Notes: generated from the sequence alone by a model not told the origin. Numbered from the stretch's first letter, positions 3,267-63,741 are shown. The stretch: DNA of 64,000 bases from IMGVR_UViG_3300032331_003609:1-64000, one strand, 5' to 3'. Translations and numbers: made by a program.

Positions 3267-3284
3267 TCTAAATAAAAAACAAAA

Positions 3285-3716: not shown

Positions 3717-3725
3717 ATATATAAA
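3716..3725 (+). promoter_or_regulatory. putative late promoter GATATATAAA (one example of a recurring motif)
   Basis: The same motif precedes starts at 7422, 10093, 14879, 16992, 20609, 23483, 24150, 32265, 43420, 48911, 49835, 51183 and 63757, and on the minus strand at 21799 and 56455. Confidence 0.7.
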
Positions 3726-3741
3726 TGAAATAATAAAAAGA

Positions 3742-10090: not shown

Positions 10091-10118
10091 AGAATATATA
10101 GATAAAATTATTATAAAG

Positions 10119-24162: not shown

Positions 24163-24294
24163 AAAAAATCCTCATTCCGTGAAAAAGATACGACCTTTTA
24201 CGCGAAATAATTACAGTCTTTCAGGTACGGGACCACGACCCCCGATCAGAAAGACTTTATATTTGTCCCAATACAGGGAAAGTGTGGATTTTTT
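24163..24294 (+). ncRNA. structured RNA leader / sRNA, copy 1
   Basis: AAAAAATCC (24163) pairs with GGATTTTTT (24286); inner hairpins CGT..AAAAG/CTTTTACG, AGTCTTTC/GAAAGACT and TCCC/GGGA; late-type promoter directly upstream. Confidence 0.55.
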
Positions 24295-24311
24295 CCAATC
24301 TAATTGGAAAA

Positions 24312-26488: not shown

Positions 26489-26489
26489 T

Positions 26490-29962: not shown

Positions 29963-29965
29963 AAT

Positions 29966-30310
29966 ATGAAACGTATTAAAATTATATTATTGTGTTTCGT
30001 GGTGTCGTGTACAAAACCCGATTTACAGGTTCCTGCTATTGCAACCGACAAAGAATTTTTTACTGTGCCCGAAAATACGGTAAAAAATGGGGACGTTATT
30101 AAATTTAATTTAACATCTGCTGGAATGTATACCTTGACAATGACGGACGCAGTCCAAAATCAAGTGGTTTCTAGAGAAAGATTTACCGGTAAGATTGGTT
30201 TAAATTCGCTTAAAATATACACAAACTCTCTTTCAACAAAATACCTAAATGTTGAACTAAAGGATCAAAATAACAACCAAATAGGTAAAACAAAAATAAT
30301 AATAAATTAA
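29966..30310 (+). CDS. lipoprotein, Ig-like (T9SS CTD-like fold)
   Basis: VVSC lipobox; GMYTLT...LKIYTNSL...KTKIII. Confidence 0.6.
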   Translation: MKRIKIILLCFVVSCTKPDLQVPAIATDKEFFTVPENTVKNGDVIKFNLTSAGMYTLTMTDAVQNQVVSRERFTGKIGLNSLKIYTNSLSTKYLNVELKDQNNNQIGKTKIIIN

Positions 30311-30311
30311 A

Positions 30312-30686
30312 ATGAAAAAATTATCTTTCCTAATTCTAAGCTTAATAGTACTTAATAGTTGTACTAAGCATGATCTTCCTGAGCCAATTTCTCAGCAAAT
30401 GGATCCAAATCTTAAAATGTCTTCTTCTTTCGGAATTAAATTACAAAATTCTTTTGTTACGAGCGAGGTGTCTATGAATGTCAAAACCGAATCAGCACAG
30501 ACCGTAACTATTAAAATATATGATATTTCTAATAGAGTTGTTTCTAAGTCAACAAGTGAAGTTAAGTCTGGCGATAATCTTTTAAACGTATACACATCAG
30601 CTCTTCCATCTTCAGCATACAGAATCGCTCTTTATGATAGTAATAATAATCTATTAGGAATAACTGATTTTAATAAAATAAACTAG
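30312..30686 (+). CDS. lipoprotein, T9SS C-terminal sorting domain-like
   Basis: LNSC lipobox; VTIKIYDISNRVVS...LPSSAYRIALYD...F.K. Confidence 0.6.
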   Translation: MKKLSFLILSLIVLNSCTKHDLPEPISQQMDPNLKMSSSFGIKLQNSFVTSEVSMNVKTESAQTVTIKIYDISNRVVSKSTSEVKSGDNLLNVYTSALPSSAYRIALYDSNNNLLGITDFNKIN

Positions 30687-30731
30687 GAGTAGTATAATCT
30701 TTAAAAAATATTTGGTGAGGAAAAAAATCAG

Positions 30732-32258: not shown

Positions 32259-32278
32259 AAAAAAGATATATAAAGTTG

Positions 32279-32396
32279 AAAAAAATCCTCATTCCGTTCG
32301 AAAGAAATTTACGTTTCTTCGTTCACTTTTTCAAATTTGATGGCTTAATGCCTGAAACTTACATGAAAAGTGAATTTCAAGTTTGAGTATTTTTTT
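32279..32396 (+). ncRNA. structured RNA leader / sRNA, copy 2
   Basis: Same 5-prime AAAAAATCCTCATTCCGT as copy 1; pairs with GAGTATTTTTTT; inner hairpins CGAAAGAAA/TTTCTTCG and TTCACTTTT/AAAAGTGAA. Confidence 0.55.
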
Positions 32397-32432
32397 CTAG
32401 TAGCTAAAACTAGAATATAAAAATAAAACAAA

Positions 32433-32744
32433 ATGAGCGAAGAAACACAAAACGACGGATCCTGGTCAGGTTTAAAAAAGACAATCGTAGGAGTATTAGG
32501 AACTGTAGTAACAGCAGGAGGAGTATTTTTAACTACTCTATTAGGCGGGGGAGATAAAGAAGCAGCACAGCCTGCTGCAGCACCCGTAATCAACATTACA
32601 AATTCAAATCAACAACAATCTGCAGGTAAAACCGTGATTATTCAAGGCGGAGGTAATGCAGGAGCAGCTAAACCCGCTGCACCAGCACCAAAGCCAAAGA
32701 AGAAAGAAGGTGACGAATTTAAAGAGGAAGCACCAAAATGGTAA
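32433..32744 (+). CDS. single-TM protein with Pro/Ala-rich tail
   Basis: IVGVLGTVVTAGGVFLTTLL. Confidence 0.7.
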   Translation: MSEETQNDGSWSGLKKTIVGVLGTVVTAGGVFLTTLLGGGDKEAAQPAAAPVINITNSNQQQSAGKTVIIQGGGNAGAAKPAAPAPKPKKKEGDEFKEEAPKW

Positions 32745-32842
32745 TAACCGGATATCAAATAGGTACCGTATTATTTTTTATGGTACTGATTGGATGGGTG
32801 ATTAATTGGAGTACAAAAATAAAGAACAAGAAAGATGAGTAA
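32738..32842 (+). CDS. small TM peptide (34 aa)
   Basis: Translated by hand: MVITGYQIGTVLFFMVLIGWVINWSTKIKNKKDE; overlaps both neighbours. Confidence 0.45.
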   Translation: MVITGYQIGTVLFFMVLIGWVINWSTKIKNKKDE

Positions 32843-33401
32843 ACAAGAAACACCAAGCGGATTTAAAGACCTATTAAATGCAATGATGACACGTAGATGG
32901 TACATCACTGCATTAGTATTGGGAGGATTCATGTTAATAATAGCAGGAATGTTTGCAGCTATAGGGGTAGGTACAAAAATGGCAGGAGAATGGAAAGAAC
33001 TTCTTCTATTATTACTAGGAGCTTTCATCGGCTCTTATGGTAAAATTATTGACTACTGGTTTTCTGATACTGATAAAGATAAAATGCTAGTTCAGAAAAT
33101 GGACGAGGAGGATGGTACTACTTTATCTCACACTAATGATATGAAGGAAACAAATAAGCCATATGCCCCAACCATTCCTGATGCATTTATTGTGGGAGCA
33201 CAAGCTGCTAGAGAATTAGCTGTAGTAGAAAATAATCAAAATTTTGAACTAGTTAAAGATCAACAAGAGCATGAGCAAGAAATGGAAAAGCTTGAATATG
33301 AATCACACAGACAATGCGAGCATGAGTGGGGTGATTCAGATCATGACGGACACGAAGAATGTCAAAAATGCGGATTATTAAGAGAAAATTTCGAGGGATA
33401 A
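32835..33401 (+). CDS. two-TM membrane protein with coiled coil and C-terminal Cys/His cluster
   Basis: Two hydrophobic helices; CEHEW..SDHDGHEECQKCG. Confidence 0.7.
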   Translation: MSKQETPSGFKDLLNAMMTRRWYITALVLGGFMLIIAGMFAAIGVGTKMAGEWKELLLLLLGAFIGSYGKIIDYWFSDTDKDKMLVQKMDEEDGTTLSHTNDMKETNKPYAPTIPDAFIVGAQAARELAVVENNQNFELVKDQQEHEQEMEKLEYESHRQCEHEWGDSDHDGHEECQKCGLLRENFEG

Positions 33402-33427
33402 TCCCAACAATAATATAAAAAAACAAC

Positions 33428-33688
33428 ATGACTTTTAAAGAATGGATTATTGATTTATTCAAAGACGAAAGAGGTGCAATATCAGTTAAACCTGTAATTG
33501 CATTCATCGGAGCATTATTCCTTTGCGGAACTATGCTAGCAAATTCCTTTACAGAAGAGCATTTTAAACCAGCTAATGAATTGGTAAATGCTGTAATGGT
33601 TATAACAGCAATTGGCATGGGTGCTGATACCTTAGATAAATTTACTAAGAAAGCACCTGCTGATAAAAAAGAAGAAGAAGAAGCTTAA
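33428..33688 (+). CDS. small two-TM protein (holin-like)
   Basis: Two hydrophobic segments and a charged C-terminus. Confidence 0.6.
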   Translation: MTFKEWIIDLFKDERGAISVKPVIAFIGALFLCGTMLANSFTEEHFKPANELVNAVMVITAIGMGADTLDKFTKKAPADKKEEEEA

Positions 33689-52244: not shown

Positions 52245-53141
52245 ATGAAAGTAATTTGGGTCCTAGAAAATATTAAAAAGGGACATAAATTTTTTTTACC
52301 AGAAATAGAGCTTCTTGGATTAATTGCTTCTGTATCTAACTGGAAGATCCTGTATCCAAAAACATCCACCCATCTTTATTGCGATTCATCAGTTTTAGAA
52401 TATCTAGATAAAATAGAGATATCAGATCTTTGGGAAACAATACACACGAATGAATTAGATTCCCCGGATCTAATAGACAGAAACCCATTCTGGGCAGCTT
52501 CAAAAATTAAAGTCATAAAGGAAATAGAAGCTCCATTTATAATAATGGATTGCGATCTTTATTTCAAAGATCAATGTTTAGATCTTGATTCATTTTCAGA
52601 ATTTGATATAATTACAAACCAAATAGAGGATGGGATAGGATACTATCCTACAAAAAGGGATTCAGTTATAAAAGACATGATAGATCCATTCGGATACAAA
52701 TCAAGCCATGCATTCAATGTTGCATTTCTTTATATAGGAGATGAAAGGATCAGAAAAGAATATACAGATCTGGCATATTCCTGGATGGAGGATCTTTCTA
52801 TGAAGAACGAAGAATCTTTAAGTGGAAAGTATATGATTTTTTGTGAGCAAAAAATGCTAAAGGAATTTGCTGATCTTTATGATGCTAAAATAATATGTCT
52901 AGCAGATCATTCGATAAAAGGAGCTGAGGAAAAGATCCCTATAATAAATGGGTATAAAACATTGAATCTTAATGATTCTAATTATGTTCATTTGCATAGA
53001 CTAAAATCAAGGGTTAAATCAAATACAGGTTTGTTCCTTGATACCAGAAGTGATGTTATTAAATCAATTTATAATTTAGATAAACTGATGGCTAAGCGAT
53101 CTTTTTCTGCTCTTAAGCTTTCTAATGAGGATCTATTCTAA
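52245..53141 (+). CDS. glycosyltransferase-like protein (DUF6734-like)
   Basis: FWAASKIKVI...PFIIMDCDLY (DxD), FNVAFLYI, IFCEQKML, YVHL. Confidence 0.6.
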   Translation: MKVIWVLENIKKGHKFFLPEIELLGLIASVSNWKILYPKTSTHLYCDSSVLEYLDKIEISDLWETIHTNELDSPDLIDRNPFWAASKIKVIKEIEAPFIIMDCDLYFKDQCLDLDSFSEFDIITNQIEDGIGYYPTKRDSVIKDMIDPFGYKSSHAFNVAFLYIGDERIRKEYTDLAYSWMEDLSMKNEESLSGKYMIFCEQKMLKEFADLYDAKIICLADHSIKGAEEKIPIINGYKTLNLNDSNYVHLHRLKSRVKSNTGLFLDTRSDVIKSIYNLDKLMAKRSFSALKLSNEDLF

Positions 53142-53760
53142 CCTTTCTTTTGTCTGATATGATAAAATCATAAACTTTTTTATCATCCATTTCTACCCCA
53201 ATATAATCAAGCATTCTTTTTATCTCTTCTATATTATGATCTACATATAGATCTTCATAATAAAAAATTGGCCATGATTTTTCTTCGGCTATTAACTTCA
53301 TTCTTTCCGAGAAGTGTAAAAACGAATTTGTTTCCTTCTCTATTCTTACTTTATCTATTTTATCTATTTCGTATATCTTAGGGATATCCCATCCCATTTT
53401 AGAATCTGCATTTACTAAAAGACTTTCAGCCTGTAGTCTTTTGTCTCTCCTATCCAGAACTATAACTCTTTCAAAAAATCCATCCATCCAATTTATGAAT
53501 TCTATTTCTTCTAGCCCTAAAGATTTTACCGGATGTTGACTACATCCAAAAAGTGTTTTTATTAAGATCTTATCGAATTTTAAAAGAGGATTTATGTGAT
53601 CAAAATCAAATCCTTTTCTATAATAGTCCACATAATTTCTTGGGTTAAATGGCTCATAGAAGCATTCAAAGCCTTCTGAATAGAGTTGTGATTCTAGCAT
53701 CCTATATAAAGAAGTTGAGCCAGTTCTGGGTCTAGCCAGTATTGCTATTTTATTAAACAT
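53122..53760 (-). CDS. sulfotransferase-like protein
   Basis: ILARPRTGSTSL, YEPFN, LDRRD...AES, YYEDLY. Confidence 0.75.
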   Translation of the reverse strand: MFNKIAILARPRTGSTSLYRMLESQLYSEGFECFYEPFNPRNYVDYYRKGFDFDHINPLLKFDKILIKTLFGCSQHPVKSLGLEEIEFINWMDGFFERVIVLDRRDKRLQAESLLVNADSKMGWDIPKIYEIDKIDKVRIEKETNSFLHFSERMKLIAEEKSWPIFYYEDLYVDHNIEEIKRMLDYIGVEMDDKKVYDFIISDKRKVRIDPH

Positions 53761-54318
53761 TTATAATAATTTATTGACATCTTTATTTTTTCTAAGCCTT
53801 TGACCATACGGAAATTGTTTGTTTTCTAATTCTGGTATATTTAAATAATCCAGTATTCTTTCAAATCCGTTGTTATAATATAATTCTTCGTATGATATAT
53901 TAAAATAACCTTTATCTAAATAATTATCTTTTATTCCTAGTTTTATCTCGTTAAAATATGATGTATCAGCATCTTTGATCAGTTCTTCTTTAAATACCCA
54001 ATTTCTATCCCAATTATTTGTTTTATTAGCATTTAACCATGATTCGATTTGTTCTGTTGCATTCTCTCTATATAGTATAATCGTTTTATCACACACTGAT
54101 AATAATTCAGAAAAGTCTACTTCTGGGTAATATGTTTCTTTAATTAAAAGATGTTGTGTACTATATTCCCAAGATTTAGGGGATGTTCCGTTCTTAAACC
54201 ATTCTTTATCGGAACTAGTTATTGGTTCGAATAGTGTTGTAAATTTTTTATTAAAATAAAACCAATTTGCTAAATTTGTTGAACCACTTCTTGGCTCTGC
54301 TAAGATTGTGATTATCAT
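53761..54318 (-). CDS. sulfotransferase-like protein
   Basis: ILAEPRSGSTNL, FEP, LYREN..EQIES, SYEELY. Confidence 0.75.
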   Translation of the reverse strand: MIITILAEPRSGSTNLANWFYFNKKFTTLFEPITSSDKEWFKNGTSPKSWEYSTQHLLIKETYYPEVDFSELLSVCDKTIILYRENATEQIESWLNANKTNNWDRNWVFKEELIKDADTSYFNEIKLGIKDNYLDKGYFNISYEELYYNNGFERILDYLNIPELENKQFPYGQRLRKNKDVNKLL

Positions 54319-54320
54319 GT

Positions 54321-54762
54321 TTAAATTATTTTATTTATAATTTTAGATTTAATTAACGTATATCTTTCAATATCAAACATCTCAGGTTTAAAATCTAAAT
54401 ATTCCTTCCATTGCCATTGGTGACCTGTTATGTTATAAGAGCTATTCATATAAAAATTATAAAGCTCGTCACAATAGACTGGTTCGGGTAATTTTCCGCC
54501 TACCCTTTTATTTGTTTAATTAATCCGGTAGAGTTGTTATAGACAATAACAATGTGAGATTTATTTAAATCCGGTGTTGCTTCTCTTAGTTCTATTAATG
54601 TGTCTTCATAATTACATCGGCCACAATTACCCATTCTTGCAATCATTTCGATAGAATAATGCTTTTCTAAATCAACCCAATAATATCCAATAAGATAGAG
54701 CCTATTTTATTTCCAACGATACTATCAATTATTTTTAATTGATGTGATCGAGATGATGCCAT
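54321..54762 (-). pseudogene. frameshifted gene (or homopolymer assembly error)
   Basis: Three consecutive reading segments join by -1 shifts in A4 runs (54705-54708, 54506-54509) into a 147-aa ORF that begins TAATG-coupled and ends ...KIINKII like its neighbours. Confidence 0.5.
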
Positions 54763-54902
54763 TAATTCAAGTGTTTATCTTTTATAGCATTCACAAAAGC
54801 TTGAAATGCAGTAGCAACCTTTGCTTTTAAATCTGCAGATACCGGTGTTACCGTTGTCTTAATTATTTGTAAGGGTCTTTCTATTCTTTCTTTCTTTGCC
54901 AT
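54762..54902 (-). CDS. small hypothetical protein (46 aa)
   Basis: Translated by hand: MAKKERIERPLQIIKTTVTPVSADLKAKVATAFQAFVNAIKDKHLN. Confidence 0.65.
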   Translation of the reverse strand: MAKKERIERPLQIIKTTVTPVSADLKAKVATAFQAFVNAIKDKHLN

Positions 54903-54932
54903 ATTTTTTATTTTATATTTTTATTAAAACTA

Positions 54933-56435
54933 TTAAGGCTCAAATTTTTGGTTACCACCCCATCTACATGTTGGACACCATGTTTCATAACACCAGTTTC
55001 CGCAATACGTAGAACTACACCAGCATGTTGGATTGTGCATTATACTGTATAGTCCTTCTCCGATATCAACTAAGAATAAATCGGAAGGTTCAAAATCTAA
55101 ACCATAGATTGTTTTGATTGCATATTCCATTTCTAATCCGGTAATTGCTACTGTTGTCAATTCGTTTGTCTCGGAATCTGTTATTACTAATTTATCCCCG
55201 ATGTAAAAATTGTTTACATTTTCAAATCTTGTTTCGGTTGATCCTAATTCTTCAATAAAATATTTACAGCTTGGTGTATCTACCCAAGAAAGTCCATTTT
55301 CTAACGTGATTCTAATATGTATGGTGTCAACTTGTGCTGAAACAATTTCTTGTAAAGATGTGCTTAATTTTGTTAAAGTAGCATTTGCTTGGGCTAAATC
55401 GCAATCCCATCCATAGGTTTGCAAATTCTCTAGATTTGGGGTACCCCCAAGATTCCCATTTAAATCCGTGAATTGTATGGATCTCATATAATCACCTATT
55501 TGAATCGTACTTAAATCCGCTAAAGTTCCGTCATATTTTAAAATTTTGCTATCTTCTTCTAAGTGATAATTCACAAGACCAAATTTTCCTAAGGCCTTTG
55601 TAATGTATTTATATCTGCTCTTCTGCTTAAATTCTCTAGATCCATCTTTAAATTCATTCTGTGAAAATGAAACAGGAAGAACAGCAGATTGCTTATAGCA
55701 GCCCATGTTGATAATATCAATTTCTGAACCATATAGAATATCTATACTCCTGATAACACTATATTTTCCTTCTTCCAGATTCTGAACATCATATACAAAT
55801 TCTTGTAGCATGTTATTTTCCGGAAGATTAAGATTTGATTTCATTGCTCCAAATTCGGTTTCATTCTGGATAGAATAAATCGCGGGAAGTTGCATTGGAT
55901 CATATTGAGGATATCTGTGTTTTTTAATGAGATTTGGTTCATCCACGTTTGAATAGTCAAGAACATCTAATGTATCCAAAGATAATTCTCCTCCAAAGTA
56001 TGTTTTAGGTATAAATTCAGACCCTTCCATTAACTTAAAAAACTCAAATTTGTCTGCACAGTATGTTTCGTCTATTAGTGCTGTTGTATCAAAAGATTGT
56101 CTAAGAATGAATTTATGGTCAGCATCTTCTATATAAGGAACAGTAACGGAATTAGCGCTAACAATATGCGGAATATATGTTATTTCATTCTCCTCACATT
56201 TTTCCTTCAATATTTCCTCAAATCTGTGGGGGAAATTGAGAGGTAGAAATGCTTCGGTATCTGTGTATATGTAATGAAATTCTGTGATGTTATTCAGAAC
56301 CAGCATAGAGAATAAGGGCGCATAATCTAATAAATCTGCACCATTATTATAAATAGTTGTGTTTGTGTTAATCTCTAGAATTTTTACATCTTCCCCTGTT
56401 TGTAATAAATCGCTACCAATTATAGTTGCTTTCAT
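54933..56435 (-). CDS. circularly permuted ATP-grasp-like domain + Hint domain + Cys/Trp-rich C-terminal peptide
   Basis: N-terminal GSDLL...ILEINTN (ATP-grasp D..E.N), then LIKK and MLQEF; Hint-like LEEDSKILKYDG..IQIGDYMRS ... IYGLDFEPSDLFLV...IMHN; then PTCWCSSTYCGNWCYETWCPTCRWGGNQKFEP. Confidence 0.7.
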   Translation of the reverse strand: MKATIIGSDLLQTGEDVKILEINTNTTIYNNGADLLDYAPLFSMLVLNNITEFHYIYTDTEAFLPLNFPHRFEEILKEKCEENEITYIPHIVSANSVTVPYIEDADHKFILRQSFDTTALIDETYCADKFEFFKLMEGSEFIPKTYFGGELSLDTLDVLDYSNVDEPNLIKKHRYPQYDPMQLPAIYSIQNETEFGAMKSNLNLPENNMLQEFVYDVQNLEEGKYSVIRSIDILYGSEIDIINMGCYKQSAVLPVSFSQNEFKDGSREFKQKSRYKYITKALGKFGLVNYHLEEDSKILKYDGTLADLSTIQIGDYMRSIQFTDLNGNLGGTPNLENLQTYGWDCDLAQANATLTKLSTSLQEIVSAQVDTIHIRITLENGLSWVDTPSCKYFIEELGSTETRFENVNNFYIGDKLVITDSETNELTTVAITGLEMEYAIKTIYGLDFEPSDLFLVDIGEGLYSIMHNPTCWCSSTYCGNWCYETWCPTCRWGGNQKFEP

Positions 56436-56467
56436 ATTTTTTTATCTATTTATATTATATATCTGTC

Positions 56468-56773
56468 TTATAAAATCGTCCTAAAATCCTTTATTTTTAT
56501 AATTTTACCATATTTAGCATCGACTTCTTTCCATTTGCCCTTTGGACATGGTTCAGATTCCATACTAAATATCTTCCTATTTATGGGACATCCACAGCTT
56601 CCACAAATTGCTGACCATGATTTTTTTTTAAGTATTTCAGTGTAATGTTCACACCCCGAATTATCTGCATCTCCCTGACATATTAGCAACCTTTCCTGTG
56701 AGTTTGCCCTTTCGATCTCTGTTGGGTTTTTAGACCTTTTCCAAGCATTGAATATCTCTATAAAATTTATCAT
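56468..56773 (-). CDS. small Cys-rich (Zn/Fe-S) protein
   Basis: RLLIC...GCEH...ICGSCGC...K...CPKGKW. Confidence 0.7.
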   Translation of the reverse strand: MINFIEIFNAWKRSKNPTEIERANSQERLLICQGDADNSGCEHYTEILKKKSWSAICGSCGCPINRKIFSMESEPCPKGKWKEVDAKYGKIIKIKDFRTIL

Positions 56774-57498
56774 ATTAATGTTCTATTAGATTTGACGATG
56801 TCATACCTATCATAGATAGAATTATAGCGCGTGATGAATTCGTCATCTAGTTTTAGATTACATTCGAAATGTTGGCTTCCGTTTGATTTTTCCATTTTAA
56901 AAGGCTTACCAATTTTATTAGATACCCATTTTTCTAATTCGTCAAATTTTCCAAATTCGAACCAAGTTATATTAGGGTCGTTGTTGTGCCAATATGAAGT
57001 TGGTCTAAATATAATTTCGAACATATTTCCTAAATATGTATCATATTTTTCATCCATCCCAATTTTTTTTATGAATTCACTGACTGTATTACGTAATGCT
57101 TCTGTAGTAAAAATATCGGTATCTTTATAAAATAGAATATCATTTACGTTTAATTTTTGTAATATAGTACTATATTTTTCCCCATGCTCAAAGTGTATCA
57201 TGTCAATTAAATGCTTCCAGACTGAAATGAATCGTTCATGTCTATTTCTCCTTATTGCAATTATTTCATATTGATCTCCAAAGTGTCTTTTTAGATTTAA
57301 TATACCCTCATGCAGATGAAGCATGATGTCTGCAAGATATTCATTATCCAATTTTAAATCGATGTTAGCATTGTGCTTATCTATGATCTTTTGTTCGCCA
57401 TGCTTTACGTCCAATTCACTACGCAAACAAGATATGTAAAAAGAAGTAGATGCACATCTAGGTAAACTAATAAATAAAAAATTGTTTTCTATTAACAT
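56770..57498 (-). CDS. sulfotransferase-like protein (Sulfotransfer_2 type)
   Basis: FISLPRCASTSF, HLH, IRRNRHERFISVW. Confidence 0.7.
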   Translation of the reverse strand: MLIENNFLFISLPRCASTSFYISCLRSELDVKHGEQKIIDKHNANIDLKLDNEYLADIMLHLHEGILNLKRHFGDQYEIIAIRRNRHERFISVWKHLIDMIHFEHGEKYSTILQKLNVNDILFYKDTDIFTTEALRNTVSEFIKKIGMDEKYDTYLGNMFEIIFRPTSYWHNNDPNITWFEFGKFDELEKWVSNKIGKPFKMEKSNGSQHFECNLKLDDEFITRYNSIYDRYDIVKSNRTLI

Positions 57499-58722
57499 CT
57501 ATATTAAAGATTTTTGTTTTTGTTTGATTCCTTTATTTATTATGTCGTAGGAGAATTTACCAAATGTAATACTAGCTTCATCTGCAAATATATCGGCTAG
57601 ATCTTTTTTTGGTTTAAAATTATACGAAGAATCTATTATTAAATCTAAAGGATGTGGCAAATCCCCTGCTAAATCATTCACTTTTTTCCAAAAATTGGTA
57701 TCTGTTCTATTTGTCAAATAATGATAATAAATAAAAATCATATTTTGTGTATTGATAGAATTAACAAATTTATTATATTTTTCTAAAGTAATTTTTTTGG
57801 AAATAACCTCATTGAATACTTCTAGTTGTAAAATTACAGTCATTATTGAAGTGGCCTCTAATGGCTCTAAAAATCCGGTGCTTAATCCTATTGCCAAGCA
57901 ATTTTCAATCCATACATTTTCGTATGATCCTGGTTTAAATTTAATTTGTCTATTAAATTCAACAGAATGTCCTACCCATTCTATTATTTCTTTTTTGGCA
58001 TCATCTTCAGTAATTTCAGTTGAGTCAAATATGTAGCCACACCCCATTCTTGTCTGGAGTGGTATCTGCCACATCCATCCATGTTTCATAGCGATAGATT
58101 TGGTTGTTGTTTTTATGTCAGTAATCTTGTTTGGTAAAAAAAACGGAATTGCGGTATTTACTTTTAAATGAGATTCGTACGAAATCCAATTTGATTTATA
58201 ATGATTACCGATTAATAATCTTTTAAAACCGGAGCAATCAATAACAAATGATGCATCAATCGTTGAATCTGTTGTCTTAAGCCCAATAATTCTGTTTTCG
58301 TCACTTGCTACTGTTTCGGTTACAATACCTTCGATCCAATTAACCCCCCGTTCGATCGATAAGGATTTAAGGTATTTTGCTAATAATCTAGCATTAAAAT
58401 GGTACGCATATCCTTGGCCTTTTACTTTATAATCAATCGGATGATGATACGCAAGATTAGGCTCTGTCCAATTTTCAAAATCAATACCTGTTTTAAATGT
58501 TGCCTCGCAATTTTTGATCATATCATCAGATGTGATCCCTAGCTCATTTAAAAATTTTACAATATTACCAGTAGTTCCTTCACCCGCACCCAATATTCCG
58601 ATCTCATCACTTTCGATTAATGTTATTTTTGAATTTTTAAATTTACTATTTAAATACAACGCTGACAACCATCCTGCTGTACCCCCGCCAACTATAACAA
58701 TATTATCTAAATTATATTTCAT
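57499..58722 (-). CDS. tryptophan halogenase-like flavin-dependent enzyme (PrnA family)
   Basis: GGGTAGW, GAGEGT, ATFKTGIDF, YHFNA, IDCSGF, GWMWQIPL, GLSTGFLEPLEATSI. Confidence 0.9.
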   Translation of the reverse strand: MKYNLDNIVIVGGGTAGWLSALYLNSKFKNSKITLIESDEIGILGAGEGTTGNIVKFLNELGITSDDMIKNCEATFKTGIDFENWTEPNLAYHHPIDYKVKGQGYAYHFNARLLAKYLKSLSIERGVNWIEGIVTETVASDENRIIGLKTTDSTIDASFVIDCSGFKRLLIGNHYKSNWISYESHLKVNTAIPFFLPNKITDIKTTTKSIAMKHGWMWQIPLQTRMGCGYIFDSTEITEDDAKKEIIEWVGHSVEFNRQIKFKPGSYENVWIENCLAIGLSTGFLEPLEATSIMTVILQLEVFNEVISKKITLEKYNKFVNSINTQNMIFIYYHYLTNRTDTNFWKKVNDLAGDLPHPLDLIIDSSYNFKPKKDLADIFADEASITFGKFSYDIINKGIKQKQKSLI

Positions 58723-58723
58723 A

Positions 58724-59368
58724 CTATATTAACGATTTTTGTTTTTTGATAAATTCAAATCCAACATTTCCAGCTAAAACCATCCTATCCTTTGTTGAAT
58801 CCAGCGCGTGCTGTGGAGAGTGAGGTAGATCTGATTTCATTATTATAAAATCCCCTTCTTTTGGTAATATAAAATATTCGCAATCATCTTCACCTTTAAT
58901 ATACAAAGTGCCATCATCATCTTTTAAATTGTCAGGCATTTGAATATAATATATCCACGTAAAATGAGGTATAAATGTATTTCTTTTTTGATTTATTTCT
59001 GTATGTATGTGGTATTGGCGTAATTCGCTTTCGATATTATAGAATTGTACAGGATTTTTAGCTCTAACTACGTTTACCCAGCAATCTGTACTTATTTTAT
59101 TAAATGGTAAATTATACTCCATTTCGAAGATCTTAATGCATGATTGGATTCCAAAAATTAAAATTTCGTCTAATTTATTTTCAATCTTAATTTCTCCAAC
59201 AAAATTTAAATCATTACTTTCCTCGAAATAACCATAGCCATCTTGTGTGACATTAGGTAAGCCTTCAATAATTTCGTTGCACTTTTTTAAAATGTCATTT
59301 TTAAAATCCAGGAGATTTAATACATCTTTATATAAATACGTGATCCTATCATAGATTATCTTTTCCAT
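58724..59368 (-). CDS. putative 2OG-Fe(II) oxygenase
   Basis: YHIH, WIYYIQMP, GTLYI, PKEGDFIIMKSDLPHSP, RMVLAGN. Confidence 0.7.
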   Translation of the reverse strand: MEKIIYDRITYLYKDVLNLLDFKNDILKKCNEIIEGLPNVTQDGYGYFEESNDLNFVGEIKIENKLDEILIFGIQSCIKIFEMEYNLPFNKISTDCWVNVVRAKNPVQFYNIESELRQYHIHTEINQKRNTFIPHFTWIYYIQMPDNLKDDDGTLYIKGEDDCEYFILPKEGDFIIMKSDLPHSPQHALDSTKDRMVLAGNVGFEFIKKQKSLI

Positions 59369-59373
59369 AAAAA

Positions 59374-59838
59374 TTAAATAATAGATTTGGTTGTATGTGG
59401 TTCTAAAACATTATTTACATTAATTTTTAAATAATATTTTGTACCACTGAGAATTTTATTATTTCCGCATTTAATGTTAGGAAAAAAAGTTATCATATCT
59501 CCTGGTAGATTATTCATATGTAAATTTTTATTAGTTTCCTCATTTAGAAATATAAAATTCCCTCCCTTAAAATCTGAATTTAATACTAGCAATAATGTAA
59601 GATCATACCCGGGTTGGCTTAAAAAAACAGGTTCAGTATTTTCTGTAGATATGCTGTAAAATTTTATATCATTTATAGACATACCGCTCCCGTTGTATTT
59701 CATCTTATTCAAATGCTCTTTTAATTTTTGAGCCAAGAAATCATTGCTGGTGGATAATTCATTTTTAAAATCATACAAAAGACTATTACATTCCTCAGAT
59801 GATATAAAATTTTTTAAACATGTAACTCGTTTTTCCAT
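59374..59838 (-). CDS. degenerate 2OG-Fe(II) oxygenase-fold protein
   Basis: LTLLLVLNSDFKGGNFIF...PGDMITF...GTKY; the metal-ligand His residues appear absent. Confidence 0.65.
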   Translation of the reverse strand: MEKRVTCLKNFISSEECNSLLYDFKNELSTSNDFLAQKLKEHLNKMKYNGSGMSINDIKFYSISTENTEPVFLSQPGYDLTLLLVLNSDFKGGNFIFLNEETNKNLHMNNLPGDMITFFPNIKCGNNKILSGTKYYLKINVNNVLEPHTTKSII

Positions 59839-60401
59839 TATATTAAGTTCTGTTTACCTAATTTTGTTTTAACTAACCCGATCCAATTTACCAAAGAATA
59901 TCGCACACCTTTTTGAATAGGGGTTACTCTATGTACCAATCTTGAATTAAACACATATAATGTTCCAATTTTGTTTTCTATTGTTACATGTTCTCCTTTA
60001 ATATTTTTAATCTCTAATATACCCCCCGTATACATTTCGTTTAGTTGAATTACTATTGACATAAACCTGTCTTTATATACTAAATCCGTGCTATCTGTGT
60101 GCCAATCAAAGTATTCCCCCTCTTTATATTCGGTAAATTGATATTGCCCCAATTTGGTAGCTTCCATACCGTTTATATCGAGAGAGTTCCTTAATTTGCT
60201 TGTTAATCTTTTATTTAAAAATCCCAAATCAGATATCCAACCAACCGACGATTTTCTGTTTATTTTATTAAGGGGTTTTTTAGCTGTCTCACCATATACA
60301 GTGGCAGGTGATAAAATTAATTCTTCCTTGCATTTATTTAAAATGAAATCACATTCTTCTTTAGAAAGAAAATTTTTGAAAATACCGATATAATCGTTCA
60401 T
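59838..60401 (-). CDS. 2OG-Fe(II) oxygenase (PKHD type)
   Basis: QFTEY..GEYFDWHTD, SIVIQLN..YTGG, HRVTPIQKGVRYSLVNW. Confidence 0.9.
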   Translation of the reverse strand: MNDYIGIFKNFLSKEECDFILNKCKEELILSPATVYGETAKKPLNKINRKSSVGWISDLGFLNKRLTSKLRNSLDINGMEATKLGQYQFTEYKEGEYFDWHTDSTDLVYKDRFMSIVIQLNEMYTGGILEIKNIKGEHVTIENKIGTLYVFNSRLVHRVTPIQKGVRYSLVNWIGLVKTKLGKQNLI

Positions 60402-60415
60402 TATTGAATGTAATT

Positions 60416-60748
60416 TTATGTGATATTTCTAATTATTATTGTTAGAGATATGCAAATCCATATGGTATTAAAAGCAACTAATGTTGGCAGATTTTTTTTC
60501 ATAGAAGCCCATATCAAAAGAGAAGAAGTGAGAAGTGTTAAAAAGTGCATATACCAAAGTTCTATTCCAAAAACTAATCCGGGTATAATGATCATGGCCT
60601 TTGTAAGCCACGCTGCAAACTCTATTGTATTATAATCCGTCCAGTAATTCTTATCAAGAAACATTTTATACCTATCAAGTATCTTCCCCCACCCTATTAT
60701 GTAATAGAGTAATATATTAAAAGCAGCAAAGACCAGCACGTATTTCAT
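60416..60748 (-). CDS. multi-TM membrane protein
   Basis: About four hydrophobic segments. Confidence 0.7.
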   Translation of the reverse strand: MKYVLVFAAFNILLYYIIGWGKILDRYKMFLDKNYWTDYNTIEFAAWLTKAMIIIPGLVFGIELWYMHFLTLLTSSLLIWASMKKNLPTLVAFNTIWICISLTIIIRNIT

Positions 60749-60772
60749 TTTTAAACGATATTTAATTATATC

Positions 60773-61252
60773 CTATATTAGGGTTTTTTCTTTCTTTTCT
60801 ATTCCTATATAGAATGAAATTAAACTAAATCTACTTCCCCTGATAACATTTAAAACCCGATGCTTTATTTTTTTATGCAGCATTATGCTATAATTCATTT
60901 GAGGCGTTATTTTTATTTTTTGATTCTTAAAAATATACTCAAATTCACCGCCATCAAAATCTTCATTAATATATGTAACAATGGTTAAATCTGCTTTATC
61001 GTTATGAAAATCGTCATTAATATTTGTTTTATCGGTTACCTTGTTAATCCATAAGCCGCTTAACTCGTAGCCGTTTGGTAAATATTTTGAGCATTTTTCC
61101 TGATATTCTAGCAGATCTTTTTCCGCGTTTAATATTTTTCTAACGTAGTAATTATTTCCATCAGGTACCTGGGTTTCTACAAAATCCGAGCATATCAAAC
61201 CTAAAAAAAGCAGATCCTTCTCTGACAACAGATTTTGGTGTGTGTTAATCAT
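60773..61252 (-). CDS. 2OG-Fe(II) oxygenase
   Basis: FHND, IVTYINEDFDGGEF, HRVLNVIRGSRFSLISF. Confidence 0.85.
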   Translation of the reverse strand: MINTHQNLLSEKDLLFLGLICSDFVETQVPDGNNYYVRKILNAEKDLLEYQEKCSKYLPNGYELSGLWINKVTDKTNINDDFHNDKADLTIVTYINEDFDGGEFEYIFKNQKIKITPQMNYSIMLHKKIKHRVLNVIRGSRFSLISFYIGIEKKEKTLI

Positions 61253-61264
61253 AACAGCTTTTTA

Positions 61265-61474
61265 CTATTTCTTAAGTCCGTACTTAATCCATCTATACCA
61301 AATTCTCTCATGTAAGTAATATTGAATTGGTTTATAGATTAATTCTGCTACCCCAAATGCTGCTCCTACTTTAATGGAACCGCTTATTAACCACATTAAT
61401 AAGAATCCAATCACCGTACTTACTATGCGATATGAGATTGTTTTTGCTATATGTCTTTTTCTTTCTACTATCAT
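61265..61474 (-). CDS. DUF2061-like small membrane protein
   Basis: RHIAKTISYRIVST...YYLHERIW. Confidence 0.75.
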   Translation of the reverse strand: MIVERKRHIAKTISYRIVSTVIGFLLMWLISGSIKVGAAFGVAELIYKPIQYYLHERIWYRWIKYGLKK

Positions 61475-61851
61475 TATCCTTTTGTTTCGTCATAGGTAAT
61501 AGATCCGTCTGGTGTCATATGTCCGGTTCTGATTGCAGTTCCGCTTATCGCCGCAACATCTACTGGTGGTTCATGGTAGATCACGTCATATCCAACCCCA
61601 CGTCCGTAGTTTACACTCTCAATGTCAGGAATTACCGAAATTAGAAGTCTCCCTGTTTGTATGTAATCATTTAAAGCAACCTTTAGTTCGTCAAAAACTT
61701 GTTGGGAAGATTTAGGATTGTTCTCATCCTGCGGGACATCCCTGATTGCAACCCAAACGTTTTTTCCCTGGCTGAATTGTTGGTCTATTAACCACTGATG
61801 GCCTTTATGCCAGTTCTGCCATCTCCCGATATAAAGTGAGTATTTTTTCAT
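61474..61851 (-). CDS. HIGH-superfamily nucleotidyltransferase (NadM/cytidylyltransferase-like)
   Basis: YIGRWQNWHKGH and ISGTAIR motifs. Confidence 0.8.
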   Translation of the reverse strand: MKKYSLYIGRWQNWHKGHQWLIDQQFSQGKNVWVAIRDVPQDENNPKSSQQVFDELKVALNDYIQTGRLLISVIPDIESVNYGRGVGYDVIYHEPPVDVAAISGTAIRTGHMTPDGSITYDETKG

Positions 61852-62285
61852 ATAGATTCTAGATTTAGAAGTGAGATAAGTTCCTCGAGGGATTCTTCAG
61901 GATTATCCCCATTTGTGAAAGTTTTATGATTGCTTACAGGGAATTCAAATGTTCCTACGTGGAATTTTTCTTTCCCCGAGAAATGTGGCCGATTGAAAAG
62001 AACTTCTATCACCTCATTATTCGCTTTTAGATCCTCCCTAATTGCACGATAAGGACAAACCATACTTATCACTACATCATGTCCCTTTTGGCTCATAAAG
62101 CGAGCTATAGTGAACGATTTTTCGATGTTTCTGATCCTTCCAGAGTATGAATAATCGGTATTTGGGAAGATCTCTCTTAGATCATCTCCATCTATCCAAA
62201 TAGTGCTATTCCCAAGTTTTTTTACCAGCCTGCTAGCCATCTCGGTCTTTCCCGTTCCTGGCTGTCCGATGAATAAATAAATCAT
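61848..62285 (-). CDS. cysC: adenylyl-sulfate (APS) kinase
   Basis: GQPGTGKT, IDGDDLRE, DYSYSGRIRNI, VISMVCPY. Confidence 0.8.
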   Translation of the reverse strand: MIYLFIGQPGTGKTEMASRLVKKLGNSTIWIDGDDLREIFPNTDYSYSGRIRNIEKSFTIARFMSQKGHDVVISMVCPYRAIREDLKANNEVIEVLFNRPHFSGKEKFHVGTFEFPVSNHKTFTNGDNPEESLEELISLLNLESI

Positions 62286-62296
62286 ATGCTTAAAAT

Positions 62297-62413
62297 TTAA
62301 TGGTTATATGTAAATGGATCTCTTTTTCTAATTTCTTCTATTTTTTTTAGAAATTCTTTCTTTTTTTTCCTTTTTTGGAAGTAATTTTTAATCCAGTTGA
62401 TTAGTTTTCTCAT
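62297..62413 (-). CDS. small basic peptide (38 aa)
   Basis: MRKLINWIKNYFQKRKKKKEFLKKIEEIRKRDPFTYNH; first gene of the minus-strand operon. Confidence 0.55.
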   Translation of the reverse strand: MRKLINWIKNYFQKRKKKKEFLKKIEEIRKRDPFTYNH

Positions 62414-62514
62414 TGCATTTATTATATTAATTATATATTTTAAGTTTCCCACCCTATATGGCATATTATTTCGGAATTTTATTGCATTTTGCTCTAAAAT
62501 ATTAAAATATAAAT

Positions 62515-63741
62515 ATGGTCTGGAATTACAAAGACACATTGCTAGTTCACGTTGAGCTTTCTAATATGTGTAATGCTGCTTGTCCGCTTTGTCCAAGATA
62601 CGTGAATAACTCATTAAGAGTCAATCCCGAGCTTGATTTGGGTAGTGTTTCATTAGAAGATTTTAAAAAATGGTTCCCCTTAGATTTTGTTCAGAAAAGT
62701 AAAAGCTGGATATTTTGCGGAACCAATGGTGATCCTATAATGGCAAGGGATGTTTACGAAATACTGGAATATGTACTTCGCAATTCGGAAGCGAAGGTTC
62801 AGGTAAACACTAACGGATCCATCAGAGATGGGGAATTTTGGGAAAAAATGGGAGCATTATTTGCAGAACCCTGTGTCAATAGTAGATACGTTGTTTTTTC
62901 AGTCGATGGATTGGAAGACACAAATCACATCTATAGAAGAAACGTCAAATGGGATAGGGTGATGGAAAATATGGGAGCATATTCCAAATCGGGTTCTACC
63001 GGAATTTGGGATTTTTTAATATTTAAACACAACGAACATCAGTTAGATGAGGCAGAGGCACTTTGTAAAAAAATAGGATTAGCGTTTTCTCCAAAAAGAC
63101 CTTTCGGGTTTGAGACAGGAAACCCAGATGAATATCAGGATCTAATGGTTTATGATTTAGATGGCAATTTTTTATACAGGATAGAACCTGCTAGCGAAGA
63201 GTGGAGATTAAACAGATCCCTCAATAAATTTCAAAAAGGGGAAGAAAAAATATGGGTTCCCGGGAAGGAGAAAAAAAGTAAGGATCAGACAGAAGAAAAA
63301 TGGAACGGATTAATAGAAAGAGATCTTCCTAAATATCAATTTCCAGAAAGATTCAAGGGAAAATCTGTTAGCTGTAAATCATGCCATCCTATAGGAAAGG
63401 AAATATACGTTGACTGTAAGGGTAATGTTATGCCTTGCTGTTTTGTAGGAACAATGTACAATAGTGATTTTCAACACCACGAAGCATTGCAGATCAAAAA
63501 GCACTTACAAGATTGGGGGTTAGATAAAATAAATTTAAACAACCATTCTCTTGAAGAAATATTAGACAGCAAGTATTTAGACGATGTATTTGCAAATAGA
63601 TGGGATGGTGCTAAAAAGGATGAGGATAAAATGGGATATTGTTTCAATACATGTTCGGTTGATCATATGAAAGACCTTTTCGTTAGAAAGGAGGAATTAC
63701 CTATATCCCCGGAAAAACACGAGATAAAAAGTCTTATATAG
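62515..63741 (+). CDS. radical SAM protein with SPASM/twitch domain
   Basis: CNAACPLC (CxxxCxxC), GTNGDP, SVDGL; C-terminal C...IYVDCKGNVMPCC...CFNTC. Confidence 0.9.
   Translation: MVWNYKDTLLVHVELSNMCNAACPLCPRYVNNSLRVNPELDLGSVSLEDFKKWFPLDFVQKSKSWIFCGTNGDPIMARDVYEILEYVLRNSEAKVQVNTNGSIRDGEFWEKMGALFAEPCVNSRYVVFSVDGLEDTNHIYRRNVKWDRVMENMGAYSKSGSTGIWDFLIFKHNEHQLDEAEALCKKIGLAFSPKRPFGFETGNPDEYQDLMVYDLDGNFLYRIEPASEEWRLNRSLNKFQKGEEKIWVPGKEKKSKDQTEEKWNGLIERDLPKYQFPERFKGKSVSCKSCHPIGKEIYVDCKGNVMPCCFVGTMYNSDFQHHEALQIKKHLQDWGLDKINLNNHSLEEILDSKYLDDVFANRWDGAKKDEDKMGYCFNTCSVDHMKDLFVRKEELPISPEKHEIKSLI

Follow-up and report, generated by a model that had tools for sequence, protein, structure and literature searches.

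In an uncultured large phage, and in at least 78 related viral contigs, nearly every tailoring enzyme encoded around an unusual, predicted self-cleaving precursor protein ends in the same short tail (…K-x-x-K-S/T-L-I), which is conserved, apparently undescribed and best read as a putative address tag. The analysed window is the whole stretch of 64,000 nucleotides (IMGVR_UViG_3300032331_003609:1-64000), a part of a 245-kb genome with a GC content of 30-35%. In the window the strict motif [KR]x[LI][LI]-COOH ends 7 of 19 genes between 53122 and 63741, but 0 of 97 other ORFs and 0 of 361 shadow ORFs (P about 1e-12). The first-pass annotation, in which a C-terminal (K/R)x(L/I)(I/L) tag was noticed on unrelated tailoring proteins, is confirmed as an observation and holds far beyond this window.

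Tagged and untagged genes of the window

All C-termini noticed at first were found at their genes. Among the tagged proteins is a compact flavin-dependent (Trp) halogenase of 407 aa (57499-58722, minus strand; PF04820 at E = 7e-97) with the tail …KQKSLI. At higher coordinates, also on the minus strand, lie a 2OG-Fe(II) oxygenase-like protein of 214 aa (58724-59368; PF13640 at E = 2e-4; …IKKQKSLI), a 154-aa protein with no Pfam hit (59374-59838; …TTKSII, orthologues ending KSLI), a 2OG-Fe(II) oxygenase of 187 aa (59838-60401; PF13640 at E = 4e-14), which carries a loose form of the tag (…GKQNLI), and a probable 2OG oxygenase of 159 aa (60773-61252; weak PF03171, 2OG-FeII_Oxy, hit at E = 5e-3; …EKKEKTLI, orthologues ending EKTLI and EKSLI). 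In the 187-aa oxygenase the Pfam domain ends at residue 174, so the last 13 residues are an appendix to the fold, and all 159 members of its family end in two hydrophobic residues. On the other side of the halogenase, also on the minus strand, there are a sulfotransferase-like protein of 242 aa (56770-57498; …SNRTLI; a family of 80, with KTLI in 42) and a Cys-rich protein of 101 aa (56468-56773; …DFRTIL), whose family of 73 lies at offset -1 from the core gene and ends in two hydrophobic residues in 100% of cases. A radical SAM/SPASM enzyme of 408 aa (62515-63741; PF04055 and PF13186) is encoded on the opposite (plus) strand with no coupled downstream gene and nevertheless ends …HEIKSLI; its orthologues end KKSLI and TKSLI.

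Looser forms are found as well. A sulfotransferase-like protein of 185 aa (53761-54318, minus strand) ends …DVNKLL, while members of its family in other loci end KRTLI, GKRLI, KKQLI and INKLI. It falls in the same BLAST family as the 212-aa sulfotransferase-like protein next to it at the cluster edge (53122-53760, minus strand; PF13469 at E = 1.8e-4), which is untagged (…RIDPH), as is its orthologue in the related locus L011. The gene at 54321-54762 (minus strand), noted at first as frameshifted, is a broken copy of a 231-aa cluster family: in a tblastn search intact family members matched three different frames, residues 23-108 are missing, and the last piece still ends …INKII. The distant gene at 2304-2894 (plus strand) encodes a sulfotransferase-like protein of 196 aa ending …KAKIL. 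It has 25% identity to the product of 6433-6927 in the related locus L004, itself with a weak PF13469 hit, and belongs to a family which elsewhere lies inside the cluster and of which 92% matches the broad tag pattern [KRNQ]x[LIVMF][LIVMF]$.

The first-pass annotation stated that the PAPS-supply enzymes, the membrane proteins and the Hint fusion lack the tag, and this is also correct. Untagged in the window are the core protein (54933-56435), the 46-aa peptide immediately downstream of it (54762-54902; …KHLN), a 110-aa membrane protein (60416-60748; …IRNIT), a DUF2061 membrane protein of 69 aa (61265-61474; PF09834 at E = 7e-17; 0 of 41 tagged), a 125-aa protein (61474-61851; no Pfam hit; 0 of 37 tagged), which has a GRWQNWHKGH motif and is nucleotidyltransferase-like, its role in PAPS supply being inferred, and an APS kinase of 145 aa (61848-62285; PF01583 at E = 3e-10; …NLESI), all on the minus strand.

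The formula first proposed is, however, too narrow, as KQNLI, VNKLL, INKII and KAKIL do not fit it. The constant part is [L/I][I/L]-COOH, usually preceded by S/T at -3 and by K at -4 and -7. Among 73 tails, 54 end in I, 17 in L, 1 in M and 1 in V, S/T is present at the third position from the end in 55, K at -4 in 54 and K at -7 in 39. The claim that at least five different folds are involved should be taken with some care, because certain assignments are weak: apart from the 154-aa protein without a Pfam hit and the 159-aa protein with a weak one, the sulfotransferases rest on one weak PF13469 hit plus P-loop-like N-termini.

Enrichment, conservation and level of selection

The strict motif occurs in 7/19 cluster genes against 0/97 elsewhere in the window (Fisher P = 1e-6). 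Its internal tetrapeptide frequency is 0.37%, which gives P(>=7 of 19) = 5e-13, and it precedes 0.65% of all six-frame stops. Equal frequency of the motif at C-termini outside the cluster and lack of conservation in homologues had been named beforehand as grounds for rejecting the tag, and neither was found.

In 78 related viral loci 48-97% of genes at offsets -6 to -1 from the core gene carry the tag, and 61-77% at +3 to +5, whereas the core and the 46-aa peptide after it (offsets 0 and +1) carry it in 0-1% of cases and beyond ±9 genes the rate is at most 11%. In total 486/713 near genes are tagged against 42/543 far genes, and most of the far hits belong to cluster families. It must be noted that the loci are related, hence counts across loci are not independent. 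The six enzyme families found in nearly all of the 21 complete loci end in two hydrophobic residues in 100% of members, and at least five further families carry the tag as well; these include several 2OG oxygenases, two sulfotransferase-like families, a halogenase, radical SAM enzymes and a Cys-rich protein. In contrast, two hydrophobic residues end only 1% of the cores, 0% of the 46-aa peptides (0/67 tagged), 0% of the DUF2061 proteins, 0% of the 126-aa protein family and 19% of APS kinases. The split between tagged enzymes inferred to act on the substrate and untagged cofactor-supply, membrane and core proteins thus holds across the 78 loci.

The tag is deeply conserved. For the 214-aa oxygenase 118 of 120 homologue clusters, down to 43% identity, keep the tail (KSLI 42, KSLL 15, NSLI 14, KSII 11). 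The tag is also present in loci whose core is only 27-33% identical (L009, L011 and L012), and it does not differ between lineages. Moreover, it follows membership of the system: 9 of 13 representatives of the compact halogenase clade are tagged against 3 of 137 canonical halogenases of roughly 500 aa, and the P-SSM2 and HTVC008M homologues are untagged. The APS kinase orthologue of the related locus L014 has gained …RLKSLI, whereas the radical SAM orthologue of L013, whose retrieved 21-kb neighbourhood has no cluster genes, ends …ISEIK.

Selection acts on the peptide, because Ser, Thr and Leu codons vary synonymously (Ser uses both codon boxes, Thr four codons and Leu five) and conservation stops at the stop codon, with unbiased stop codons and no shared sequence after them. 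Nevertheless, the last Ile is encoded by ATA in 39/48 cases (81%) against a 46% background, and a purely peptide-level model does not explain this nucleotide-level bias.

The core protein

The core is a protein of 500 aa with a net charge of -40, for which an AlphaFold2 model (pLDDT 80.8) shows a predicted circularly permuted ATP-grasp domain (residues 1-284), a predicted Hint domain (291-468) and a 32-aa Cys/Trp/Tyr-rich C-terminal peptide. For the N-terminal domain the top 11 of 48,161 chains compared all belong to the GspS/YgiC/eukaryotic glutathione synthetase clade (7uka, 3k1t, 5oeu, 3n6x, 3kaj, 2io7, 2wyo, 1m0t, 2vpm and others), although the Z values of 6.9-8.9 over residues 1-283 are only moderate; Foldseek gives 5oet at E = 1.3e-3, and no profile hit to Pfam or to PDB sequences was obtained. 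Residues G7, D9, E21, N23 and T24 of the Mg/ATP-binding D…E-x-N motif are invariant in 45 sequences, and the location of this motif at the N-terminus is consistent with permutation, while ligase activity remains inferred. The Hint fold is supported by Foldseek (E = 9e-8 to 1at0) and by structural alignment with BIL2, the C. thermocellum BIL domain and mini-inteins (Z = 15-16, rmsd about 2 A over 135-146 residues). M466-H467-N468 are conserved in at least 90% of 45 sequences and align with the intein terminal Asn, as needed for Asn cyclisation. The residue aligned to intein position 1 is, however, the conserved His291 instead of a Cys/Ser/Thr nucleophile, and the domain has no TxxH block, therefore only C-terminal cleavage is expected, by inference.

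The core is the only large, universal, untagged and highly conserved protein of the cluster (about 60% identity across hundreds of clusters). The system is very abundant and entirely uncharacterised: the core is represented in 268 IMG/VR contigs and by more than 560 protein clusters, and no GenBank phage encodes it. Its inferred chemistry, a permuted ATP-grasp ligase fused to a Hint domain and a Cys/Trp/Tyr-rich peptide, is unusual. The core of L011 lacks the Cys-rich peptide, and in L009 a second Hint domain beginning with Cys directly follows the peptide. The 46-aa peptide downstream is basic (pI 10.1) with a conserved RP..IK…AF..VV..IK.KHL pattern, and short MAK… ORFs also follow the core in L011, where they are clearly related, and in L012, where the relationship is doubtful.

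Interpretation of the tag

The first-pass interpretation, a convergent docking or targeting signal (PDZ-like recognition or cargo loading) or alternatively a shared degron, is partly supported. It is a genuine protein-level C-terminal signal shared by unrelated folds, restricted to the cluster and conserved in homologues, and its distribution fits a docking or address function, whereas a class I PDZ ligand is not a good description, and compartment loading and a degron are neither supported nor excluded. Convergence is plausible, because different folds carry the tag and single lineages gain or lose it, but the spread of a short DNA cassette is not excluded, given the ATA bias.

The best explanation, held with moderate confidence, is a short linear motif with the approximate consensus hydrophobic-K-K-x-K-[S/T]-[L/I]-[I/L]-COOH, always at the free C-terminus. 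In this view it marks the enzymes that act directly on the macromolecular substrate of a phage peptide-maturation cluster built around the ATP-grasp/Hint/Cys-rich-peptide precursor, while makers of a diffusible cofactor stay untagged. The basic, aliphatic-ended tails would dock in turn on one conserved, cluster-encoded site, most likely the strongly acidic ATP-grasp/Hint body of the precursor, whose charge would suit Lys-rich tails, perhaps together with the 46-aa basic peptide. Docking would place small single-domain halogenase, hydroxylase, sulfotransferase and radical SAM enzymes next to the C-terminal peptide, which the Hint domain would then release by Asn cyclisation. On the other hand, the core's own C-terminal 30 residues are predicted to be disordered, so the model shows no pocket, and the tails reach only about 8-13 residues beyond the fold, which gives little reach. 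It can be said that the motif, its restriction to the cluster, its conservation, the partition of families and the folds predicted for the core rest on the analysis itself, whereas binding of the tag to anything, the receptor, the substrate, the ligase activity and Hint cleavage are inferred.

A bolder version of this idea, which may be put forward only tentatively, is a reverse-polarity recognition system for peptide maturation, in which a protein-sized, self-cleaving leader (a permuted ATP-grasp ligase plus a Hint domain that cleaves only at its C-terminus) would carry the binding site, and every enzyme that touches the substrate would carry the same 4-8-residue C-terminal handle. Any enzyme fold could then be recruited simply by acquiring the tail. 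The system is widespread in uncultured large phages and absent from cultured phages and cellular genomes. If the tail is a universal docking handle, it would be a simple and portable rule for assembling multi-enzyme peptide-modification pathways, and a few residues might be enough to bring arbitrary enzymes to a scaffolded substrate. The tail would also be a bioinformatic marker, since ending in …K-[S/T]-L-I would flag which genes of these viral clusters act on the substrate, including families with no recognisable domain.

Two alternatives remain possible but are considered unlikely. According to the first, the tail is a degron or remodelling tag recognised by a host AAA+ protease (ClpXP, ClpAP or FtsH), which would give the tailoring enzymes a short, timed life in the infected cell. 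The strictly terminal position, the basic run followed by a small residue and then aliphatic residues, and the invariance across many viruses would fit a conserved host machine, and by analogy the ClpX C-motif 2 of MuA (…RRKKAI-COOH) may be a comparable tail. However, the tag is confined to one gene cluster out of more than 500 flanking genes, no phage benefit is evident, and the absence of the tag from the PAPS-supply enzymes of the same cluster is odd if turnover of the pathway were the aim. According to the second, the tail directs enzymes to a compartment or surface, as a cargo-loading peptide for the capsid interior or a tether to the small membrane proteins of the cluster or to anionic membrane. 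Short C-terminal peptides load cargo into HK97-fold shells, the cluster nearly always includes a DUF2061 protein (18/21 complete loci), and the tail is cationic with a hydrophobic end. Nevertheless, no shell, encapsulin or BMC family appeared in the Pfam scans of cluster proteins, the tail is too short and not amphipathic enough for a membrane-targeting helix, packaging of 10-15 cofactor-dependent enzymes into a capsid has no obvious rationale, and the 110-aa membrane protein is not universal.

It also remains possible, but is still less likely, that the tails are substrates of the ATP-grasp domain, which would activate the terminal Ile/Leu carboxylate and ligate it to an amine, extending the C-terminus as RimK or tubulin tyrosine ligase do or tethering it covalently in the manner of LysW. 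The best structural matches of this domain all act on peptide C-terminal carboxylates, RimK and ArgX/LysX appear lower in the list, the Mg-binding motif is invariant, and the tag requires a free carboxylate. The core's own released peptide is, however, the more obvious substrate, the second Hint domain of L009 would also activate the C-terminus of that peptide, which suggests that this is the chemistry needed, and covalent modification of a dozen different enzymes has no precedent. A by-product of AT-rich composition, of translational coupling between abutting or overlapping genes, or of a DNA or RNA element at gene ends, in spite of the ATA bias, is already largely refuted by the absence of the motif from shadow and other ORFs and its rarity before six-frame stops, by equally tightly packed genes elsewhere that lack it, by G/C-containing and non-synonymous-box codons for S/T at -3, by the uncoupled radical SAM gene and by the lack of conservation after the stop codon.

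Comparison with known systems

In RiPP pathways, including those with protein-sized NHLP/proteusin leaders (PMC12537861, PMC10858898), several unrelated tailoring enzymes are also directed to one ribosomal precursor, whose large structured N-terminal part is not in the product and whose C-terminal core peptide is modified and then released. The architecture of the present cluster, a Cys/Trp/Tyr-rich peptide next to a halogenase, oxygenases, sulfotransferases and a radical SAM/SPASM enzyme, is suggestive of such a pathway. In RiPPs, however, the recognition element sits on the substrate and the reader domain (RRE) on each enzyme, whereas here the shared element sits on the enzymes, no Pfam family other than the catalytic domain was detected in those scanned, and the putative leader is a 468-aa ATP-grasp/Hint protein that probably cleaves itself. 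Docking on it, which would be the mirror image of the usual logic, is an inference.

Phage clusters combining several 2OG dioxygenases, Trp-halogenase-like enzymes and sulfotransferases, predicted to modify peptides, have been described in cyanophages (Iyer et al. 2010, PMC2938197) and in a jumbo-phage survey (PMC7824862), but those papers do not mention a shared C-terminal tail or an ATP-grasp/Hint precursor. Encapsulin cargo-loading and BMC encapsulation peptides are likewise short terminal addresses shared by unrelated enzymes; the present tag is shorter, strictly ends in two aliphatic residues, and lacks the Gly/Pro-rich linker and the GSL-type motif, and no shell gene was found among the scanned cluster proteins. 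C-terminal docking peptides of NRPS/PKS subunits also organise the enzymes of a pathway, however they mediate specific pairwise ordering with cognate docking domains, whereas here one identical tag sits on 6-13 enzymes per genome. ClpX C-motif 2 tags share with it the basic run followed by small and aliphatic residues at the extreme C-terminus, but the present tag is restricted to one biosynthetic cluster and excludes its cofactor-supply enzymes.

KSLI, KTLI, RTLI, KSII and RTIL formally match the class I PDZ-binding motif (x-[S/T]-x-hydrophobic-COOH), including the free carboxylate, but whole families have E (halogenase, KELI), K, D or N (KKLI, KDLI, KNLI) or Y (SYLL) at p-2, and Lys at -4 and -7 is conserved in addition. 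No PDZ family appeared in the Pfam scans of cluster proteins, which did not cover every protein, or among the top 25 of 35 families listed for 59 other window proteins. The PTS1 peroxisomal signal ([SAC][KRH][LM]-COOH) is not matched, since the final tripeptide is [ST][LI][IL], and with a median intergenic gap of 11.5 nt, ATGA/TAATG overlaps and long co-directional gene arrays the genome is that of a prokaryotic virus.

Genomic context

The window is the first 64 kb of the IMG/VR contig IMGVR_UViG_3300032331_003609 (244,850 bp), and window and contig coordinates coincide. GC content is 30-36% over most of the window, but 42-45% in positions 1-4000, a stretch which holds a 2OG oxygenase (1323-2144, minus strand) and the tagged sulfotransferase-like gene at 2304-2894. 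Genes are small (mean 190 aa) and tightly packed (median gap 11.5 nt), they often overlap by 1 or 4 nt, about 90 consecutive genes lie on one strand, and Shine-Dalgarno-like sequences are not used. This is the organisation of a prokaryotic virus, although one relative is labelled as a giant-virus bin (GVMAG). The reading of the contig as a eukaryotic giant virus, and hence of the C-terminal tails as PTS1 or ER signals, was rejected on the basis of gene packing, overlaps and long co-directional arrays.

Nothing in GenBank phages is close. Megablast of the cluster against GenBank phages gave no match, and the halogenase is at most 39% identical to those of pelagiphage HTVC008M and cyanophages. 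A tblastn search of phages with the core protein was also without a match, whereas in GTDB genomes one hit was obtained, on a 5-kb MAG contig which is probably viral. Comparison of ten large window proteins with PHROGs returned almost nothing, and a profile of the core run against PDB sequences returned nothing.

The C-terminal motif

The first-pass annotation claimed that unrelated tailoring proteins share a C-terminal (K/R)x(L/I)(I/L) tag, and this observation held. Every C-terminus it listed is present. With a mechanical gene call (longest non-overlapping ORFs), [KR]x[LI][LI]-COOH ends 7 of 19 genes in 53122-63741 and 0 of 97 elsewhere in the window (Fisher P = 1e-6). The same tetrapeptide occurs internally at 0.37%, which gives P(>=7 of 19) = 5e-13. 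None of 361 shadow ORFs ends this way, and the motif precedes only 0.65% of all stops in six frames. The explanation of the tag as an artefact of AT-rich composition, which had been set beforehand as one of two grounds for refutation together with lack of conservation in homologues, is therefore excluded. Nevertheless, the formula of the annotation is too strict, as KQNLI, VNKLL, INKII and KAKIL do not fit it. A logo of 73 tails from nine loci shows I54/L17 at -1, L54/I16 at -2, T28/S27/K10 at -3, K54/N13 at -4 and K39 at -7, thus the motif is about eight residues long with a rigid [L/I][I/L]-COOH end. The tag ending INKII belongs to a decayed gene (54321-54762, minus strand), in which pieces of a 231-aa cluster family lie in three frames with residues 23-108 deleted; the remnant still ends in the tag.

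Selection acts on the peptide. At the tag, Ser is encoded from both codon boxes (TCN and AGY), Thr by four codons and Leu by five, stop-codon usage does not differ from that of other genes, and the sequences after the stop share nothing. A DNA-level element or a late-promoter-like motif at gene ends was rejected because the codons vary synonymously and nothing is conserved after the stop codon. Enrichment of TAG stops after the tag was seen in the window (4 of 10) but not across loci. One nucleotide-level oddity remains in the last sense codon of tagged genes from the window and from the related viral loci L004-L014: the terminal Ile is ATA in 39 of 48 cases against a 46% background (P = 1e-6). 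Orthologues are not independent, so this P value is inflated, but the bias is still unexplained, as a codon-context explanation based on the next base was rejected. One possibility is the spread of a short DNA cassette.

Conservation in homologues and position relative to the core gene

The tag is conserved in homologues. The 214-aa oxygenase (58724-59368) has 184 homologue clusters, and of the best 120, down to 43% identity, 118 keep the tail: KSLI 42, KSLL 15, NSLI 14 and KSII 11. In loci found through the halogenase and the radical SAM enzyme, the orthologues keep the tag, and so do cluster genes with no counterpart in the window, including GDSL-type hydrolases, an epimerase-oxygenase fusion and several unknowns. 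In the related locus L014 (51% identity) most genes in a run of about 18 carry it, the run being interrupted by the core, the small peptide, DUF2061 and the 135-aa NTase-like protein.

All these loci share a 500-aa gene (54933-56435, minus strand), referred to as the core. It is encoded by 268 IMG/VR contigs, and at least 561 protein clusters match it, most at about 60% identity. In the 78 loci analysed, tag frequency plotted against gene offset from the core is 48-97% at -6 to -1, 0-1% at 0 and +1, 61-77% at +3 to +5, and at most 11% beyond +-9. Near genes score 486/713 and far genes 42/543, and most of the far hits belong to cluster families in larger clusters. The loci are phylogenetically related, so pooled P values overstate independence. 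In the 21 loci with full flanks the partition is binary. Six enzyme families end in two hydrophobic residues in 100% of members, namely two 2OG-oxygenase families, two sulfotransferase-like families, the Cys-rich 95-aa protein and the compact halogenase, although several fold labels in the cluster rest on weak Pfam hits. In contrast, the rates are 1% for the core, 0% for the 46-aa peptide, 0% for DUF2061, 0% for the 126-aa nucleotidyltransferase-like protein and 19% for APS kinase. Each genome carries 6-13 tagged genes. The composition of the tag does not differ between lineages, for which reason covariation between tag variant and core lineage cannot be used to locate a receptor site.

The tag follows membership of the system. 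Among the 150 best halogenase representatives, 9 of 13 compact (about 410 aa) members are tagged, while only 3 of 137 canonical (about 500 aa) members end in [LI][LI]. The halogenases of P-SSM2 and HTVC008M and their neighbouring oxygenases are untagged, and no GenBank phage encodes the core. The APS kinase of L014 (6047-6478, plus strand) has gained a full tag (…RLKSLI), whereas most orthologues end …KLDL or …LESI. In another related locus, L013, the radical SAM orthologue (10001-11203, plus strand; 73% identity) lies among structural-looking genes, next to homologues of window genes 24282-33688 instead of the cluster, and no cluster genes were found in the 21-kb neighbourhood retrieved. It stops at …ISEIK, eight residues early relative to the window protein, and has no tag.

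Predicted architecture of the core protein

In an AF2 model (pLDDT 80.8), residues 291-468 of the core form a Hint domain, with Z of 15-16 against BIL domains, mini-inteins and the Hedgehog autoprocessing domain. The terminal H467-N468 is conserved and aligns with the intein Asn, but the position of the N-terminal nucleophile is occupied by a conserved His (His291) and there is no TxxH block. Cleavage at the C-terminal side only is therefore inferred, and it would release about 32 residues following the pattern xCWCxWxYCGxWCxSxxCPxC…, rich in Cys, Trp and Tyr. Folded alone, residues 1-284 match only ATP-grasp enzymes of the circularly permuted GspS/YgiC/eukaryotic glutathione-synthetase type: the top 11 of 48,161 chains fall in this clade with Z = 6.9-8.9, and Foldseek gives E = 1e-3. 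The invariant G7-x-D9…E21-x-N23-T24 motif is the usual ATP-grasp Mg-binding motif, placed here at the N-terminus. These Z values are moderate, and enzymatic activity of the domain is a prediction only.

Variants of the core exist in more distant loci. In L009 (7173-9101, plus strand) a second intein-like Hint domain, starting CFIGE… and ending VHN, directly follows the Cys-rich peptide, so that the peptide is bracketed by two Hint domains. The core of L012 (7193-8695, minus strand) has a different, 8-Cys peptide, while that of L011 (5731-7131, minus strand) has none (HN followed by FVPEK) yet still has tagged neighbours. A conserved basic peptide starting MAK… (RP..IK…AF..VV..IK.KHL), of 46 aa in the window (54762-54902, minus strand), follows the core in most loci examined, including L009 and, in a shortened form, L011. 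The short ORF at that position in L012 is only doubtfully related. The peptide may be an adaptor, an acceptor or a second substrate.

Interpretation of the tag

The cluster looks like a phage pathway that decorates a ribosomal peptide by halogenation, hydroxylation, sulfation with self-supplied PAPS, and radical SAM chemistry. That peptide would be attached to a self-cleaving, enzymatically active carrier. In this view, the tag marks exactly the proteins expected to touch the macromolecular substrate and is absent from those that make a diffusible cofactor, sit in the membrane, or are the substrate. Three further points favour a cluster-encoded partner: the tag is strictly terminal, it is invariant across cores as low as 27% identical, and folds newly joining the cluster acquire it. 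The core is the leading candidate, because it is the only large, universal, untagged, highly conserved protein, and its net charge is -40 (-20 on each domain) against Lys-rich tails. It can be said that a selected peptide-level address or docking signal is very likely, whereas the assignment of the core as the receptor is tentative and at best about as likely as not. The proposal of the first-pass annotation that the tag is a docking or targeting signal is partly supported. The existence of the motif, its conservation and its association with the cluster come directly from the sequences, and the Hint and ATP-grasp folds from structural models, whereas binding of the tag to any partner, cleavage by the Hint domain, ligation by the ATP-grasp domain and the nature of the substrate are inferred.

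Among alternative explanations, a ClpX-type degron is weakened by the untagged PAPS enzymes and by the restriction of the tag to the cluster, seen within the 74 kb of the 245-kb genome examined. Capsid or membrane targeting is weakened by the absence of a shell gene among the proteins scanned. It is possible that the tails are substrates of the ATP-grasp domain, because this ATP-grasp clade acts on peptide C-terminal carboxylates, although the released peptide is the likelier substrate. A nucleotide-level artefact is essentially excluded.

Comparison with known systems

Formally, many tails match class I PDZ ligands. However, whole families have E, K, N, D or Y at p-2, and no PDZ hit appeared in the scans that were run. 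Functionally, the closest analogues are cargo-loading peptides, docking peptides of NRPS/PKS systems, and RiPP leader recognition with reversed polarity, the last including protein-like leaders (PMC12537861). Earlier descriptions of phage dioxygenase/halogenase clusters (PMC2938197, PMC7824862) mention neither the tail nor the ATP-grasp/Hint precursor, and literature searches for the cluster, the tag or an ATP-grasp/Hint fusion found no description.

Other genes of the window and its flank

A co-directional array of about 90 genes (3285-53141, plus strand) includes a carbamoyltransferase, a TROVE/Ro-like protein, a cyclophilin, a class 3 lipase, a thioredoxin, an FG-GAP protein, and an 859-aa protein with LCCL, C-type lectin and cohesin domains. 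There are no tRNAs, and no capsid, portal or terminase family was found in a partial Pfam scan of window proteins. An 80-aa very basic ORF (62297-62539, minus strand; pI 10.2), which may be spurious, overlaps the start of the radical SAM gene on the opposite strand. The cluster continues past the window at contig positions 63770-71272 (11256-18758 of locus L010), where it holds an 831-aa protein (…SGII), an epimerase-2OG oxygenase fusion (…KKII), an untagged epimerase, a 303-aa protein (…KSLI) and a further radical SAM enzyme (…EKII).
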